NCBI GenBank assembly: GCA_033442325.1
Contig: JAWQFM010000028.1
Span: 833,295 to 897,294 of the forward strand
Length of the DNA stretch: 64,000 bases
Source of the DNA: Salpingoeca rosetta
Taxonomy: Eukaryota; Protista; Choanoflagellata
Direction: 5' to 3'
Position numbers and translations under genes: made by a program. Below, piece after piece: positions 16,516 through 32,500 of this stretch; the first letter of the stretch is position 1, and every line of letters begins with the position of its first letter. The notes under the pieces are model-generated. The model was not told the origin of the DNA. It ran no database searches and worked only from the letters and a program-made list of their open reading frames with translations.

Positions 16516-19178
16516 CACACACACAGCTGCTGCTGCCGTACCGACTGGGATCTCAAAGAGCGATTTCTTGCCGGCCTTCTCCTCGTCAGTCTTGGACTCA
16601 AATGCAGCCTGCAGCTCAAGCAGCTGCTTCACCGCATCTGCACAGTTGAGAGGAGACAAGACGTTTGCATGGATATGTGCAAACACATGCGTGTAAGAAA
16701 CGTGTCACAGGAGTTGTCACATCCTCTGCACTACCCAAGGTCGCGCTTGCATCACCTCTTCACTACCGACACACCACTGACTGACCCTTGTACTCGACGC
16801 GAGCAAACTGCTTGGCGGTGAGCTCCGTGACGCGATCAATGACGGTCTTGTCGACGAACTTGGCGAAAAAGTCGAGGTCCGCACGGCAGTTGTCCAGCAC
16901 ATACTGGCAACAGTATCGCACATAGTCCTCCGCACACTGGTGACAGGAGTGAGGGGAGGGGGGAGGGGCGCAGGGAAGGTGGTGGTGTGGGGATGGACGG
17001 CAAAACGGGGGACAGAGGCACGCAGGCGTGAGCGTGAATGTGTTTGTGGAAACAAGGAAACATGGAAGCATGTGCAAGTTGGAGCACAACAATAAACAAG
17101 CGATAAGAAGCAACACATCAACACGTACGTCCATGCAGCCTGTGAGGTCGCAGAAAGCAATCTCGGGCTCAATCATCCAAAACTCAGCAAGATGCCTGAA
17201 GGCACAGAACACAGGACAGGCAGGAAACATCAGCAACATATGGTGGTGATAGCGATGGTGGTGGTGTTAGAATGGAAGTTCTTCCAGCGCAAGCAATCTC
17301 ATTCTGGCAGTGCGAACCTGGTGGTGTTGGAGTTCTCTGCGCGGAAGGTGGGCCCAAACGTGTAGATGTTGCCCATCGAACACGCATACGACTCGCCCTG
17401 CAGCTGCCCAGAGACAGTCAGGTACGCAGCCCGCTTGAAAAAGTCCTGTTGTTGTTGTTGTTGTGGTGGTGGTGGTGTACAGTGATGAGCAGCTGTGAGG
17501 GAAGCACGCGAGTGTGCACAGGATGGAGAAGAAGGCATGCGCCACAGACACCGCAAACCTGAGCTCGAAAACGCAAACAAAGCGGCAGTCAAGCAGTGCT
17601 GCCGCACCTTTGTAAAGTCAAACTGCTTGTCCTCTGTGCGCGGGATGCCGTCGCGTGCGAGGACGCGCTCCTTGATGGCCGCGAGCGCCGCCCGCTTCTC
17701 CTGCAGCACTGCATCCGCCGCCTGGGCATGGAAAGTGGTGGTGATGAGAGGTGGAGATACGTGTTGGTGGGTTGAGATACGTGGCGGTAGGTGGTAGGTG
17801 GAGACAGGCGGGATGAGGGCGTAGTAAGCGACACAGGGAGCAGCACAGCGAGTCATGTTTAACGGCGTTGCAGTTGTTCGTGCCAGTAGCGGTGGAGAAT
17901 TGCGCATGTGGTACCTTGATGGTCTTCTTGTTGCGCTTTGCATCGCGCATCTCCTGCACGGCCGCCTCTTGCTCGGCCACGGCATCCTCTGGCAAGCCAG
18001 GCGGTTGGGGGGTGATGGTGAGTTGCAGGGAAGAGGGTGGTGTCATGTGTATTGCACAACAGTGCAGTAGAGAACACACACACACACACACATACACACA
18101 CACACACACAAAGTCGCAGACACACATAAACACACACTTACATACACGTGTACACACAGACTCGCATACACACGTGCACACACCTGCTGCCTTGACCTCC
18201 TCGTCGGATGGGAGCGGCGTCTCGAGGACCTTCTCGGCCTTGGAGAAGAGGGTGGTGACCTGGAACATCTCGCCAGCTCCCTCGCAGTCGCTCGCCGTGA
18301 TCAGCGGCGTGTGCAGGTACATGAACCCGTTGTCGCTGAAGAAGCGGTGCGTGGCCTGTGCCAGCGCGTTGCGCACGCGAGCCACAGCGGAAATGATGTT
18401 GGTGCGCGCGCGGAGGTGGCAGTGCTTGCGGAGAACCTCCAGCGGGATGCGCGCCTTGGCAATCGGGTAGCTGCCCTCAATCAGGCCAGAGTGCACAACC
18501 TCCTCAATGTCAAGCTCAAACTTCTGCTCCTTGCCCTCTGGAGCCTTTACAATCTGCACAAGAGCACAAAGAAAAGCACAGCGCCGTGAGACAGACAAGG
18601 GGAATGTAGTTCAAGCGTGTGGGCGCGAGGCGTATGAACACTGCCCATCCAACAAGGCTGCAAGGCTTCCGACGCCAAGCACGCTACCTTGCCGCGAAGC
18701 AGGACGGAAGCGCCGGTCTTGGTGAGGGGCTTGTACAGCTTGATGGCCTCCTCGTCGCTCTCGTCAACCTTGCGCTTGCACTGCAGGTTTCCAGGGCACG
18801 AGCCATCGTTCACTTCAAGGAAGAACAGCGTGCCCTTCTCAGCAGCGCGACCTTGAGAAAAGGATAACCAGCAGCAAGGGAAAGGATGGATGAAAGTGGT
18901 TGTGTGGGAGCGTGAGGGGAAGAGTGGTTACGTTGGAGCGTGAGGTCGAAAGGGGTGTGGAATGAACGGCCAGAACAGGCAACACAGACGCAGGCGCAAT
19001 CACACACCTACAACGCACCTTTCTTGACCCAGCCGCCGACGGTGATGGTCTGCCCAAGGAACGACTCCCACTTCTCTTGCACCTCGGAGGCGTACATGCG
19101 ACCGTCGATGCCGTACGCCTTCTTGGTCGACGTCACAGCCAGCCGCTGCACCTCTTGCTCAAGCTTCGCCTCAGACAT
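15176..19178 (-). CDS. asnS: Asparaginyl-tRNA synthetase, bacterial/plant type, with an internal WHEP-like helical insertion
   Basis: [118 protein letters not shown] and [10 protein letters not shown]. Confidence 0.95.
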
Positions 19179-19582: not shown

Positions 19583-22270
19583 TCAAGCAAATGATTCCTC
19601 GTCATCGTCATCAGCGGCAGCATCACCGTGTGCAGGTGCTGCCCGGGCACCGGTTTCAAAGGCATGGATCAGGCGAGCAGCGGCACCAACGGGCACGCCA
19701 GTCAGCGCTTCTTCCGTCAGGCGCCCCCTCTCCTTCATCGCGCGCAACACCTCAAAGCTGGTCACCCCCAAGGCCGCGAGCGCGCCACGCGCATCGGCAG
19801 AGAGGTGCAGCGACGAAAGCCACTCCTCAAATGAGACGATATCACGTTTAGCAGCGGCCACAGCCATGCGCACGTGCTTCGCCATCCTCGCCGCATCGGC
19901 TTCGCGGTCAACGTGGTGCTGGAGTGACATGACGCCGTCCATGTCAAACAGAGACAGCACCACTTCACGCACGCTCTTGTGCTGCTGTGGAGGCCGCAGG
20001 TGCAGCACTTGTGTGAAGTACTCGTCGAGCGCTGCCGCCGTCTCCGTGCTCACCACATCCGGCAACTTCATCGCCAGCCGCTTCATGTACTCGGGCGAGT
20101 CATACTCGCTCGCCGACGCCACACTCATTGCGTGGCTGCTGTCGTGCCAGGCGCTGCCAACGAAGAGCGGAACAATGCGGCGGAGGCGGATCTTGTCCTG
20201 GTGCTGGCGAGCTACCTGTTGTAGCTCCAGCATCGCCATCCACTCCAGCAGCACGTTGTCACAGACGTCAGTGTGGCCGAGCGAGCGCATCTGATAAATG
20301 GCGGCGACAGACACGACGGGACAGGCGATCACGCTGTGCTGAAGAGCTGTCATGCACGCGTGCTTGAAGTTGACGCCTGCCTCGAGGTTGTTGGCGTCCA
20401 CAAAGACCACCAAGCCATGGTGCTCCAACTTTGGGTGAAGGGTCAACACCAGGCCCCGGTTGCCGCGTTGCCTGTGCCGTTGTGATGTGGGGTGGTGGTG
20501 GTGGTGAATGTCGGGGTGAGAAGGGCAAGAGGGGTGAGTGAGGCAATGGAACCAGTTCGCATCACACACACACGCACATACACACACACTCCCTCTCACC
20601 TGTAGCTGATGAAGGCGTCGTACTTGTCCTGCAGCCCGAGGACTGGCAGCAAGGGGCGATACTTGGTGCTCAGATCACTCACCCTCACCAAGTCATCACC
20701 CACCCACATGTCCTGCTTGCTCTTGTGGTGGTGCAGCACGTCCTCAAAGAACAGCGATTTCTTCTTGTTGTATGGCAACAACAGGTTGGCCTTGAGGTCA
20801 GGATAACGCTGTGAGGCGGCGGTGGTGATGATGTCGTACAGCACGTGCAGCAGCGTGCGAGGTCGCTCGCTTGTGATCTTGATCTTGATGCCGCCAACTG
20901 CGGGCACAAGCTGCAGCTCCACTGTAGTCGTGTCGATGAAGAGGATGATGTGTGTGCGGCTCAGCTTCGGTTCCTGTGCTGCTGTTGACTGTACACCTTC
21001 CAGCACACGTGCCAACACAACTGTGAACAGTCCTTCTGGCAGGAACGATGCTTGCTGTGCATCCTCAACTCCCACGCTCGCGGTCTTCTTGAAGTCAGTC
21101 AGGCTGAACGTGATGTAGGCTGTTTTCTCCTCATACGCGTCGTAGGTGTGGGCATCTTTGGCTGCAGTGGTACTCAGTATCGCCGATGATGTCTCTTTTC
21201 CCTTCAGGGTCATGGGCAGGTTGGACGGCACCAAATACTGCTGCTGTTGCTGCTGCTGTTCTTGCTGTTGCTGTCCGGCCTGCATCGTCGCGGGTGAATA
21301 TTCCGCACACAACCCGTACTCCATCATGAGTTGGAGGAAGGGCTCAACCATGTCATCCCGCACATCCTTCCACAGCACACCCAGCAGACGGCGGTGCAAG
21401 ATACCGCGATCAACGAGATCGTCCCACACGCCAGGGCCGAGTGCCCTCGCCTCGCCATCACGCACATCGCGGTGCAGGTCAAAGTTGCGGATGACGCGCG
21501 TCATCGTGTCCACCGCCCACTGCGGACTCAGGATCACGAAATCCTCCATGCCTGGCACGTGGTCGTAGTACAGCACCATCGAGTACAGGTGCAGGAACTG
21601 CAGGCAGGCTCTCGTCTCGTCACGCGTGCGCAGCCCACAGGTGCGCGCAATCTGCACCACCTCGTCAAAGGTGAGCAGAGGTCGTTTCTCGTCGCGGGCG
21701 ATGGCGTTGAGCTTGTCGTAGAGGTGGAGGTATGGCACAGCCACCTCCTGGCTCACGTACTCCTGCGCCAGGGCTGTGGAGGAGATGGTCTGGCGCAGGT
21801 CCTGGATCATGGGATCACGGATGGACTTGGTGTTGTCAACGGGCCAGAACCACAGGCTGCGCTTGTCGTTGTGGATGACGCCAGGAAAGGCCGGGTTGTA
21901 ACGCAGATGACTGTGGATGTCACGGGAGAGCTGTGTGTGAAGCGTTCTGCTGCGCACTTTGTCGGCGTGCGTGCCGACGATGAGGACGGGTGCGCCTTTT
22001 GCATGGAGGTGGAGGGAGGAGAGCCAATGCTCCATAAACTCCCACGTCTCAGCTCGCTTGCTCTCATCTTGGTGCAGCAGGTCCTCCATCGAGAACACCA
22101 GCAGGTACACCGCGTACCTGTGGGGTGGGGGGGGGTTAGGGTTAGGTGAATGGAGGAGGGGTGGTGGAGAGTTGAAAGGGTATGGGGTGGGCCGCACGCA
22201 GCCAGCACACACACACACACACGCACACACGCACGCACGCACACACGCACGCACACACACACACACATGC

Positions 22271-22304
<34 letters not shown>

Positions 22305-25300
22305 CACACTCACTCTGTGAGGAAGAAAGGGTGGAAGATGTAGAAGGTGGACTGGCCGCCCAGGTCAAACACCTTGAACGTGACCTGCGCTTCGTCCAAT
22401 GCGCCGTCCAAATCCATCTCCCTGATGGCCTTTTCAACATCTCCTGGCGACGACGAGTACGCAGCAAAGTGCGGTGATGGGCTCGGTCGTGGCTTCGGGA
22501 CAGTGGACGGTTTCTTCGCGGTGCTGGTCGTCGATGGTGAAGAAGATGGGCTGGCGGAAGTGGTACGCTGCGTGCACTGCGACGGCGTGGGCTGCACTGG
22601 CGACTGCTTCGCTGTGTCGGTGGCACTCCCCTGATCTTGTTCCTCACCGCGCGGTGTGTGTTGGCACGTTGCTTCTTGCTGTTCTCGTTGTTGCTGTCTC
22701 ACGCGCTGCTGGTGCTCAGCCGCTGCCCTGTCTGCACGCTGTCTCATTTTCTTGGCCAACTTGGTCTTTCTCGCCAGCGCCGTGTCTCGCAGCGTACGCA
22801 GATACTCCGACAGCCTGCCATCCGTGGCCTATGAAAAGGTGTGTGTGTATGTGTAAGTATGTGTGTATGTGTGTATTTGTGTGTGTGTGTGTGTGCTGGT
22901 GGAATGCGGAGGTGCGCGGTGCAGGGGTGCATTCACTCTCGGTCACGCACGCGCGCGCACACACACACACAATGCGCACCTTCCAGCTGAAGACATCCTT
23001 GGTGTTGACAATGACTGCAGTGTCGTGGGCTGTAGCGCCTCGGGTCGAGTCTTGCGTCCGCTGGAACCTCTTCCCCATCAACGAGCGAAGCGTGGTTGTC
23101 TTGCCAGCCCGCCCCTCACCAACAAACATCAGTTTCGCGCGTGCCGCCATCCGCGTGCCGGAGCGCTCAGCGATATCGCTCATGATGGACGTCATCTCCG
23201 CATAGTGGCGGGGCTGAAAGGAGTAGAGAACAGGGGAGTTGGTATACATGACGCGATGCATTCAAAACCTTGTGGTCAGTTGTGACACTGCACACGCGCC
23301 CACGCACACACATACATTCACACGCGTGCATGCACACGCACGTGCACGCCCAAGCAACCTATCACACACGCATGACTCGCTGACCTGAGGATGCGAGAGA
23401 AGCGTTACAATGTCGCTGTTGCCACGCTGATGCGCAAAGTCCAACGCAGTTTTGCCAAAAAGCTAAAGAAGGAGAGGGATGATGAGTGGGAAAGTCTCAG
23501 CATTGCTTGACCAGACAGAAGGTACGGTGACATGCACCAACTCACCCATCCAGTCTTGACAGTGGGGTTGGCGCCCAGTTGGAGGAGAGTACGAACGACG
23601 CGAAGGCGGTTTTGGTGACATGCAATGTGAAGCGGTGTCCATCCCTGTTGAGTAGGTTAAGGGGGAGGGTGTGTGAGAGGACGCGAAGGTAGACCAGAGA
23701 CGTGAATGATGAAGGCTGTGAGATACGTACATCTTTGTCTGCCTTGTACACGTCTGCTCCCTGCTCAGCAAGATACCGCACAACAGCCTCGTGGCCATTC
23801 TGACACGCGATGTACAGCGGTGTTGTGCCCTGATGAACCATCCCATTCAATCCGTACAAATCAACACAACACAACACAACATGAACCACACGTACACGTG
23901 CACAACAAAGTGACAAGGGTGAGAACAACACACAACACAAAACACACACATGCACATTCAGCTGCAGTAATTATACCTGCTCGTGTGCAACAACACACAA
24001 CACAAACATACACACACACCACCTCAAACAAACACCACCACCACCACAAACAACAACACTCTCACACGCAGTACAGCCAACAGCATTCGTGCACACAGAG
24101 CAGTAACAACACAACCTTAAAACAAAACAGAAAAAACCGTACATTGTTGTTCGCCTGGTGCACGTCTGCTCGCTGCTCAACAAGATACCGCACAACAGCC
24201 TCGTGACCATTGAAGCTCGCTGTCCACAGCGGTGTTGTGCCCTGATGCACCATCCCATTCAATCCGTACAAATCAACACAACACAACACAACATGAACCA
24301 CACGGACACGTGCACAACAAAGTGACAAGGGTGAGAACAACACACAACAGAAAACACACACATGCACATTCAGCTGCAGTAATTATACCTGCTCGTGTGC
24401 AACAACACACAACACAAACATACACACACACCACCTCAAACAAACACCACCACCACCACAAACAACAACACTCTCACACGCAGTACAGCCAACAGCATTC
24501 GTGCACACAGAGCAGTAACAACACAACCTTAAAACAAAACAGAAAAAACCGTACATCGTTCATCGCCTGGTGCACGTCTGCTCGCTGCTCAACAAGATAC
24601 CGCACAACAGCCTCGTGACCATTGAAGCTCGCTGTCCACAGCGGTGTTCGGCCCTGATGCACCATCCCATTCAATCCGTACAAATCAACACAACACCACA
24701 TAACCACACAACACAGTGGTGAGCGTGAGAACAACACACAACACACAACACACATGCACATTCAGCTGCAGTAATCATGCCTGCTCATGTGCAATAATGC
24801 CACGCACACACATACATGCAACATGTCAAACATCAACACGACCACCACAAACAACAACAGCAACGCACGCTGCGCAGCCAACAGCACGCGTGCACACACA
24901 GCAGTAACAACACAACCTTAAAACACAACGAAAAATACGTACATCGTTCATCGCCTGGTGCACGTCTGCTCGCTGCTCAACAAGATACCGCACAACAGCC
25001 TCGTGGCCATTGAAGCTCGCAATGTACAGCGGTGTTGCGCCCTGATGCACCATCCCATTCAATCCGCACAAATCAACAACACACCACAACACCGCACAAC
25101 ACAGTGGTGAGCGTGAGAACAACACAAAACACACATGCACACATGCACATTCAGCTGCAGTAATCATGCCTGCTCATGTGCAATAACACACAACACAAAC
25201 ATACACACACATTCACTTCAAACAAACACCACCACCACCACCACACAAACAACAACAAAACTACAAACGCAGCACAGTCAACGGCATGCGTGCACACACA

Positions 25301-26072
25301 ACAATAGCAACACAATCTTAAAACAAAACAGAAATAAACGTACATCTTTGTCTGCCTTGTGCACGTCTGCTCCCTGCTCAGCAAGATACCGCACAACAGC
25401 CTCGTGGCCATTCTGACACGCGATGTACAGCGGTGTTGCGCCCTGATGCGCCATTCCATTCAATCCACACAAATCAACACAATACCACATGCACATACAA
25501 GCACATCACAGTGACAAGGGTGAGAACAACACACAACACACATGCACATTCAGCTGCAGTAATCATGCCAGCTTATATGTGCAGCAATGCCACGCACACA
25601 CATGCACGCAACATGTCAAACAAACACCACCACAACAACAACAGCAACACACGCAGCACAGCCAACAGCATGTGTGCACACACAACAATAACAACACAAT
25701 CTTGCCACGAAACAGGAAAAGACACCTCATTCGCTGCCCTATTGACGTCTGCTCCCTGCTCAACAAGATACCGCACAACTGCCTCATGTCCGAAAGCACT
25801 TGCCCAGTGCAGCCCAGATGCGCCCTGCAGAACCCCATGTCAATGGTCAGCGACAACCCATGAGTCTGTGTTACGCCAAGCTCACTTTTCTCCCAATCGC
25901 AAAACAAGTGCACGCCAAGTGCAAGCACAGGTGTTGACAGACTCACGAATTCTTCATCCAGCTCCTCGTTGACGTTCGGCTTTGCTCCACCTTTGGCCGG
26001 ATCACCTTCCAACAGCAGGCGCTTGACCTGGTCCAGGTCCCCTTGCTCGCAAGCGTCAATCAGCGCGCTCAT
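19583..26072 (-). CDS. ROCO protein: ankyrin repeats - Roc GTPase - COR - TIR - SAM-like domain, 13 exons
   Basis: Exons 26072-25947, 25824-25726, 25442-25344, 25041-24943, 24653-24555, 24241-24143, 23829-23731, 23644-23546, 23462-23385, 23213-22980, 22828-22314, 22117-20600 and 20471-19583 join in frame. Roc motifs: KLMFVGEGRAGKTT, FDLGGQSTFYIFHPFFL, GTHADK. COR motifs: LQFLHLYSMVLYY..VILSPQW, FLPEGLF. TIR: YDAFISYR...VFVD..LEAG...DNVLLEW. C-terminal SAM-like: FEEWLSSLHL..LGV..GVPVGAAARLI. Confidence 0.88.
23731..25824 (-). repeat. Tandem array of about 382-412 bp units, each a 99-nt ankyrin exon plus its intron
   Basis: Exon starts 25824, 25442, 25041, 24653, 24241 and 23829 are spaced 382, 401, 388, 412 and 412 bp apart. 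Intron motifs (cacattcagctgcagtaat, ccatcccattcaatccgtacaaatcaacac) recur, and the units at 23830-24241 and 24242-24653 have near-identical introns. Confidence 0.95.
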
Positions 26073-26646
26073 GGTTGCGACGACGCAGTGCGTTGTTTGA
26101 GCGCGTGTGTGTGTCCGTGTGTGTCTGTGTGTCTGTGTGTCTGTCTGTGTGTGTGTGTGTGATCGCGCTGATGCTGTTCCTCGCTTGTCTGCTATGCTTT
26201 GCTTGCCGTGCCTTCCTGTGGACTGTGCCTCTGTGGGTTTGATGTGTCCTTCTCAGCGCTTGTTGTCTGCGTGAGCTGCTGTGACTGTGTCCTTCTTCGC
26301 GTCCTCTGCTTCTCTGCTGTTGTCCTTCTCTGGCTGTTCGCTTGGCTTGATTTCCGTTGAATGATTTCCACCAAATTTCTCCTCTCTTGTTTCCCCCTTG
26401 CGCCTCGCCCTCCACAACCACACCAACAACAACGACAAAACTCTACCACACACAATTGACAGCAGCAGCCTGACCAACAACAACAGCACAACCGCTAAGG
26501 AGAAGAAAGAAGAAAGCAACTTGTCCTGCGTCGCCACCCCTTTGCTTGATTGCTGCTTGGTGTCCTTCCGTTCCCTTCGAAACTCGAAGACTGAGTGAGC
26601 GCACGCACGAGGTTTGGCTGCCCAAGCGCTCGCAGTTGTTGCCGCC

Positions 26647-32500
<5,854 letters not shown>

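Follow-up and report, generated by a model that had tools for sequence, protein, structure and literature searches.

Each leucine-rich repeat (LRR) of the Ectocarpus ROCO genes is encoded by its own symmetric exon of 72 nt, and these exons are subject to shuffling and positive selection (Zambounis et al. 2012, PMC3341825). In brown-alga LRR-ROCO genes, whose 72-nt exons are in phase 2, alternative splicing of the LRR exons has also been reported (Teng et al. 2024, PMC11378527). A comparable situation is found in fungal NLRs, in which highly similar ANK, TPR or WD repeats undergo concerted evolution and the variable sites lie on the binding face (Dyrka et al. 2014, PMC4986451); the internally conserved repeats of a fungal NLR are the subject of Paoletti et al. 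2007, as related by Dyrka et al. Here we describe a gene of the choanoflagellate Salpingoeca rosetta, contained in a window of 64,000 nt (C28:833295-897294, where C28 denotes contig JAWQFM010000028.1 of assembly GCA_033442325.1; positions given without a contig are counted from the first letter of this window). Taking into account the Pfam matches and the gene model, its predicted protein of 1,350 aa has the domain order ANK(9)-Roc-COR-TIR, followed by a helical tail. We consider it probable, judging from the sequence, that the N-terminal ankyrin array of this gene has grown by the duplication of exon-plus-intron units and has been shuffled by gene conversion, varying the surface of a putative NLR-like receptor.

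The similarity to the brown-alga genes is considerable. In both cases a Roc-COR core is preceded by an N-terminal array of solenoid repeats, each repeat occupies one symmetric exon of equal length, exons have been duplicated and shuffled, and the gene belongs to an expanded family, members of which have been proposed in brown algae to act as immune receptors. The structural features of the Ectocarpus-type exon-shuffled receptors are thus present at the S. rosetta locus. The initial annotation of this DNA had drawn the same analogy, which holds against the literature and is closer than was then stated, since the S. rosetta gene is itself a Roco gene. There are also clear differences: the repeats are ankyrin repeats (99 nt, phase 0) and not LRRs (72 nt, phase 2), the protein carries a C-terminal TIR output, and the host is a choanoflagellate and not a stramenopile. 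Furthermore, no intronic relics or inactivated repeat exons were seen, a six-frame search of the locus having returned only the annotated exons, and the intron alignments showing no ANK-like coding stretch. Alternative splicing and positive selection are features that have been shown for the brown-alga genes.

With the fungal NLRs the gene shares near-identical tandem ankyrin repeats, changes in repeat number with exchange within and between paralogues, and variation located on the inner helix and the hairpin. However, the fungal repeats are contiguous in the coding DNA, whereas those of S. rosetta are separate exons with co-duplicated introns, and the core is Roc-COR in place of the fungal NACHT or NB-ARC domain, neither of which gave a Pfam match in the S. 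rosetta protein. The fungal group is defined by repeats at least 85% identical over at least 100 aa, and only some of the S. rosetta repeat pairs attain 85%. Combinations of Ank and TIR domains in choanoflagellates were noted by Richter et al., who did not describe the ANK-Roc-COR-TIR family. No publication dealing with Roco-TIR genes as a family in choanoflagellates (approximately 39 ANK/LRR-Roc-COR-TIR genes in S. rosetta) came up in our literature searches, and those on single-exon ankyrin repeats found nothing relevant.

Seven consecutive ankyrin exons of 99 nt in phase 0-0 had been recognised in the initial annotation, and this description is borne out by their coordinates and Pfam matches. 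Scanning of the minus strand for stop-free units of 99 nt, bounded by AG and GT, yielded exactly seven consecutive exons (E2-E8), each of phase 0-0 and each encoding one ankyrin repeat. The Pfam Ank profile (PF00023) matches single 99-nt exons with 32-41 bits, at a cut-off of 21.1. The exons and the introns lying between them are as follows.

25726..25824, minus strand: E2, ankyrin exon of 99 nt in phase 0-0 with which the array begins, found by the scan; its intron I2 is homologous to I3-I6.
25344..25442, minus strand: E3, 99-nt ankyrin exon of type A (Pfam Ank, 37.2 bits).
24943..25041, minus strand: E4, 99-nt ankyrin exon, mosaic in the exon comparison, with a type A 5' end and a type B 3' end.
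24555..24653, minus strand: E5, 99-nt ankyrin exon of type B (Pfam Ank, 32.1 bits).
24143..24241, minus strand: E6, 99-nt ankyrin exon of type B, youngest duplicate of E5 (5/99 differences).
23731..23829, minus strand: E7, 99-nt ankyrin exon of type A, last unit of the array, 97/99 identical to E3.
23546..23644, minus strand: E8, 99-nt ankyrin exon that does not belong to the tandem array (Pfam Ank, 40.6 bits).
23830..25725, minus strand: five homologous GT-rich introns with E3-E6 between them, forming mosaic modules in the intron alignments.
Minus strand: introns I2 (25725-25443), I3 (25343-25042), I4 (24942-24654), I5 (24554-24242) and I6 (24142-23830).

The earlier division of these exons into two types and a chimera proved exact. 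E3 and E7 share 97 of 99 nucleotides (31 of 33 amino acids), and E5 and E6 share 94 (30 amino acids), while E4 resembles type A at the 5' end and type B at the 3' end; at the protein level E4 and E5 are identical at 30/33 positions, and E3 and E5 at 23/33. The motif GHEAVVRYL, which had been described as invariant, is conserved in E2-E7, i.e. in six of the seven exons, but E8 reads differently at this place.

The introns carry the evidence that these exons multiplied together with their surroundings. I2-I6 (283-313 nt) can be aligned end to end (positions 25118-25153, inside I3, were masked in the intron alignments and in the pairing search described below), while I1, I7 and I8 are unrelated to them. 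The array is therefore composed of E2-E7 and five introns, in units of 382-412 bp, leaving E8 and the two capping exons outside. Tandem Repeats Finder reported for 23726-25785 a period of 412 bp, 5.2 copies and 84% matches, and 3 of 313 positions distinguish I5 from I6, in agreement with the two near-identical introns of 412-bp period noted in the initial annotation. The youngest units, U5 and U6, are 98-99% identical. On the coding strand the array introns are strongly GT-rich, and the GC skew over 24001-26000 is -0.37.

The closest Roco paralogue, 95% identical, is located on contig C36. Similarity between the two loci spans from approximately 310 nt upstream of the ATG to approximately 210 nt beyond the stop codon. 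Because it ends there, ahead of the neighbouring gene, C36 was rejected as a haplotig and is regarded as a true dispersed paralogue. At C36:445500-449859 the ankyrin array of this paralogue breaks off inside a fifth type-B exon, with a 1-nt deletion at the edge, and is followed by 4,359 N, a gap that could provide room for about ten further units of 400 bp. Along one tract of 925 bp (22496..23421, minus strand) the two genes show no difference at all; it runs from the end of exon 9 through intron 9, exon 10 and intron 10 into exon 11, most of which it includes. Elsewhere their divergence is 5-10%, reaching 21% in one intron. The tract was produced either by ectopic gene conversion in recent times or by a chimeric join in the assembly.

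Tandem duplication of the units is supported by the homologous introns, and recombination or gene conversion among them, as proposed in the initial annotation, by several tests. In the four-gamete test, 210 of the 630 pairs formed by 36 informative sites of the array units were incompatible, and the pairwise homoplasy index (PHI) statistic lay under all 2,000 site permutations (p<0.0005). The minimum number of recombination events (Rmin) was 5 within the array and 13 when four C36 units were added. Adjacent segments of the intron disagree on how the units are related: the middle segment unites unit 2 with unit 4 to the exclusion of units 3, 5 and 6, and the 3' part unites it with units 5 and 6 to the exclusion of units 3 and 4. 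Exchange of partners is seen between the paralogues as well: E4 and the C36 unit b5 differ at 9/99 exon positions but at only 2/289 positions of the following introns (287/289 identical; p=1e-4), whereas E5 and b5 differ at 2/99 exon and 44/289 intron positions. Within the array, E3 and E7 show two non-synonymous and no synonymous differences, although 60 of the 283 bases that can be aligned between the introns upstream of them are different (21%). At such divergence about five synonymous changes would be expected, and since none is seen, short-tract conversion is a better explanation of this identity than purifying selection. Taking into account the mosaic units, the swapped exon and intron partners and the near-identity of E3 and E7 between divergent introns, there is good support for tandem duplication and gene conversion of exon-plus-intron cassettes, provided that the assembly is confirmed.

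Two further properties of the units may be mentioned. The last 36-45 nt or so of I2-I6 (e.g. 24654-24695; consensus ending in TTGATTTGTRCGGATTGAATGGRATGGTGCATCAG) are far better conserved than the remainder of the introns, both in the window and in the C36 units; possible explanations are that the segment contains a branch site, that it acts in splicing, or that conversion tracts preferentially end there. In the exons with type-B 3' ends, E4-E6 (24943-25041, 24555-24653 and 24143-24241), the conserved Gly of the 'GADV' turn is replaced by Arg (CGA). This Gly is kept in the ankyrin consensus and in all C36 units, and the substitution, unusual in itself, is spread over three adjacent units.

The following course of events is proposed. 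E2-E7 and their introns arose through repeated tandem duplication of exon-plus-intron units of 382-412 bp, most likely by unequal crossing-over, with U5/U6 as the latest event. Gene conversion or unequal recombination later moved segments between the units of the array, and between these and the C36 paralogue, and it is through such exchange that each unit became a mosaic of shared exon and intron modules. As the exons are symmetric, any duplication, deletion or swap of a repeat is frame-neutral. Germline birth, death and shuffling of repeats might thus vary the length of a ligand-binding ankyrin solenoid and its hairpin and inner-helix surface. This solenoid may in turn gate the Roc-COR GTPase switch and the TIR output, which would represent NLR-like receptor logic built on a Roco core. 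We infer a sensor role for the protein and diversification of the receptor.

Ankyrin exons of this format are not limited to the gene described here. A strict pattern (AG, then GGN NNN ACN CCN CT with 99 nt in all, then GT) gave 67 matches in the genome, versus 5 for the reversed pattern used as a control. An exon equivalent to E8 is found in approximately 20 Roco paralogues, 1.5-2 kb upstream of ROC-COR. The cassette format is therefore no special device of this gene: symmetric 99-nt ankyrin exons are a genome-wide habit, which the Roco gene on C28 would have co-opted. A non-Roco gene on the plus strand of contig C13 (C13:807243-816097) contains at least 17-20 single-repeat 99-nt ankyrin exons, spaced by 220-570 bp. 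Three consecutive exons of this gene recur in identical form with a period of 1,261 bp (812702/813963, 812960/814221 and 813183/814444), which, on the sequence, points to a recent duplication of a three-exon block.

The membrane-binding repeats of animal ANK1-3 are, as Gallagher and colleagues are said to have described in 1997, largely encoded by single 99-bp exons. The correspondence of one 33-aa repeat to one symmetric 99-nt exon is common to ANK1-3 and the S. rosetta gene, and the long C13 array resembles the ANK1-3 type. ANK1-3 differ in having old, mutually unrelated introns, and recent tandem duplication of exon and intron, mosaicism and a Roco-TIR context are not known from them.

A search of the 55.4-Mb assembly with the ROC-COR exon produced 52 matches, counted as approximately 39 loci, most of them 70-76% identical; the nearest named proteins are S. 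rosetta PTSG_08560 and PTSG_11392. The survey of the further paralogues was based on coordinates and matched strings only. A paralogue on contig C8 (C8:1406183-1407997, minus strand) contains six single-repeat exons, one of which is 102 nt long (34 aa) and still in phase 0. Its introns c2-c4 are mutually 74-78% alike, and its array appears from these features to be an older expansion of the same kind as that on C28. Paralogues on C4 and C26 have single-repeat matches upstream of ROC-COR. The Logan contig L043, from another species, starts at the Roc exon and thus covers no ankyrin region.

The role of selection in shaping the array deserves closer consideration, as does the possibility that an unstable tandem repeat in a young recombining family has diversified as a neutral by-product, unequal crossing-over and conversion being a consequence of sequence similarity, while selection for diversity and a receptor role play no part. 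We consider such a neutral origin rather unlikely, although a number of observations favour it, or otherwise weigh against a selected receptor surface. Conversion with C36 extends to non-ankyrin parts of the gene, as the 925-bp tract in exons 9-11 demonstrates, and symmetric 99-nt ankyrin exons occur in non-Roco genes (C13:807243-816097, C27 and C33), in which blocks may also be duplicated, e.g. the three-exon copies on C13. It had been claimed in the initial annotation that differences cluster at ligand-binding positions. Indeed, 10 of the 12 variable residues of E3-E7 lie in the hairpin or the inner helix (p=0.014); however, in ankyrin repeats of every kind constraint is lowest at just these positions, where its relaxation would leave the same mark, and their variation is weak evidence of selection. 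Of the six positions randomised in designed ankyrin proteins, four vary in E3-E7, an enrichment that is not significant (p=0.11). In the youngest pair, E5/E6, the exons have accumulated 5 changes in 99 nt and the intron only 3 in 313 (p=0.02). Almost all of those in the exons are non-synonymous (4.5, versus 0.5 synonymous, by the Nei-Gojobori method, NG86), which speaks against the neutral explanation. Yet for E4/b5 the proportions of non-synonymous and synonymous changes (pN and pS) are about equal, as expected from conversion, and conversion instead of selection can be the source of excess exon divergence in young pairs. As to the TIR output, AlphaFold2 models of the TIR domain and tail reached a pLDDT of only 40.5 from the single sequence and 41.2 with an alignment of 10 paralogues, and sequence and profile searches of the TIR tail against the PDB gave no match. 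Against the neutral explanation stand the intact reading frame and splice sites of every array unit, the size of the family with its NLR-like domain logic including TIR, and the fact that a like pattern in Ectocarpus ROCO genes and fungal NLRs goes together with positive selection.

Diversity could also be generated at the transcript level, on top of germline shuffling, if the symmetric exons were skipped or chosen so that one Roco-TIR gene gave several receptor isoforms. This possibility, which is derived from the near-identical splice sites of seven symmetric exons and from the precedent of the LRR exons in Ectocarpus ROCO genes, seems to us very improbable. The equal length and 0-0 phase of the exons would permit skipping, and the acceptor and donor contexts of E3-E7 are identical. 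In Dscam, mutually exclusive splicing is guided by pairing between docking and selector RNA, and lamprey VLR genes undergo somatic assembly from flanking cassettes; both resemble the present locus in that interchangeable cassettes, each coding for repeats of a recognition molecule, are arranged in tandem. However, no 14-nt complementarity of the docking/selector type (G-U allowed) was found between the unique introns I1, I7 and I8 and the repeated introns I2-I6, and nothing at the locus suggests somatic change. Four RNA-like sequencing runs hold 0.23-0.28 of the sampled 31-mers, while the share expected from exon-only words of the stretch is 0.25-0.29, falling to 0.15-0.19 on omission of E3-E7; this weak and indirect test fits a spliced mRNA that keeps most exons. 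A still different explanation is that reads of two paralogous arrays were mis-joined during assembly, and that the near-identity of the units, their mosaic joints and the tracts shared without difference with C36 were created in this way; we find this very improbable. The assembly is admittedly a gapped draft, and since the C36 array is cut by the 4,359-N gap, the copy number and some mosaic joints could be assembly errors, which also counts against the history proposed above. The partial C36 exon at the gap edge has the 1-nt deletion, the 925-bp identical tract begins exactly at this edge, the window contains six 100-N gaps, and DNA runs contain only 0.71-0.82 of the sampled words. Nevertheless, the array in the window is N-free and lies within one contiguous stretch of 32 kb, the 100-N gaps being elsewhere; U5 and U6 differ at 8 positions in total and have distinct flanks; the open frame and splice sites are kept in all units; mosaicism is also present among the older, well-diverged units; and the 16 DNA-like runs, which come from several studies, contain most of the stretch.

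The array forms the N-terminal part of a gene of 13 exons on the minus strand. The hand-extended model begins with the ATG at 26072 and stays open for 1,350 codons in a single frame, ending with the stop at 19583; its splice sites are canonical throughout, and each of exons 1-10 starts in phase 0. Besides E2-E8, which are exons 2-8, the model comprises the following exons.

25947..26072, minus strand: exon 1, N-terminal capping ankyrin-like repeat of 42 aa, with the ATG at 26072 and a phase 0 end; weak Pfam Ank match (E 0.059).
23385..23462, minus strand: exon 9, C-terminal capping half-repeat of the ankyrin domain, 78 nt, 26 aa (gene model).
22980..23213, minus strand: exon 10, Roc GTPase with the P-loop (G1) GEGRAGKTT (Pfam Roc, 29.7 bits, cut-off 27).
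22314..22828, minus strand: exon 11, low-complexity insert followed by the Roc G3 motif DLGGQ (gene model and Pfam).
20600..22117, minus strand: exon 12, remainder of Roc, COR-A, a COR-B-like part and the first TIR strand YDAFISYR (Pfam scores for COR-A and COR-B).
19583..20471, minus strand: exon 13, TIR domain, helical SAM-like tail (putative) and stop codon (TIR_2, 28.3 bits, cut-off 28).

The assignment of the core to Roc is based on the Pfam match of exon 10 and on the motifs GEGRAGKTT (G1), DLGGQ (G3) and THAD (G4), all readable in the model. COR follows directly, with 69.8 bits for COR-A (cut-off 35.3), while COR-B, at 23.2 bits, is under its cut-off of 27. The TIR_2 match of exon 13 is marginal, the first strand of the domain being located in the preceding exon; a TIR_2 or TIR profile was matched by all ten paralogue exons (10/10). 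The alignment of the TIR domains, which consists of paralogues only, contains an invariant Glu (E76). Five helices in the poor structural model hint that the tail may be SAM-like, and a SAM domain in the tail has no Pfam support.

Microsatellites of the CA/GT type are present directly upstream of the start codon (26105-26161) and in several introns (e.g. 22206-22313 and 22839-22895). The downstream neighbour (approximately 16700-19175, minus strand) looks like an asparaginyl-tRNA synthetase gene, and the upstream one (approximately 26600-27170, plus strand) like a PDZ-domain gene; both are outside the C28/C36 duplication.

If the neutral explanation were true, the locus would still illustrate cleanly how repeats expand with the help of introns and how ectopic gene conversion proceeds. 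Exon choice at the RNA level, if it occurs, would mean that a unicellular relative of animals expresses a repertoire of binding surfaces from a single Roco-TIR gene. Should the growth and shuffling of the array indeed vary a receptor surface, S. rosetta would provide a third independent case, after the brown-alga ROCO/NB-ARC genes and the fungal NLRs, of a repeat domain that grows and recombines exon by exon. The shared pattern would be that of a solenoid sensor placed on a nucleotide switch and diversified by cassette shuffling. CRISPR tools and known bacterial cues are available for S. rosetta, and this organism would therefore allow direct testing of microbe sensing and TIR signalling by such receptors.

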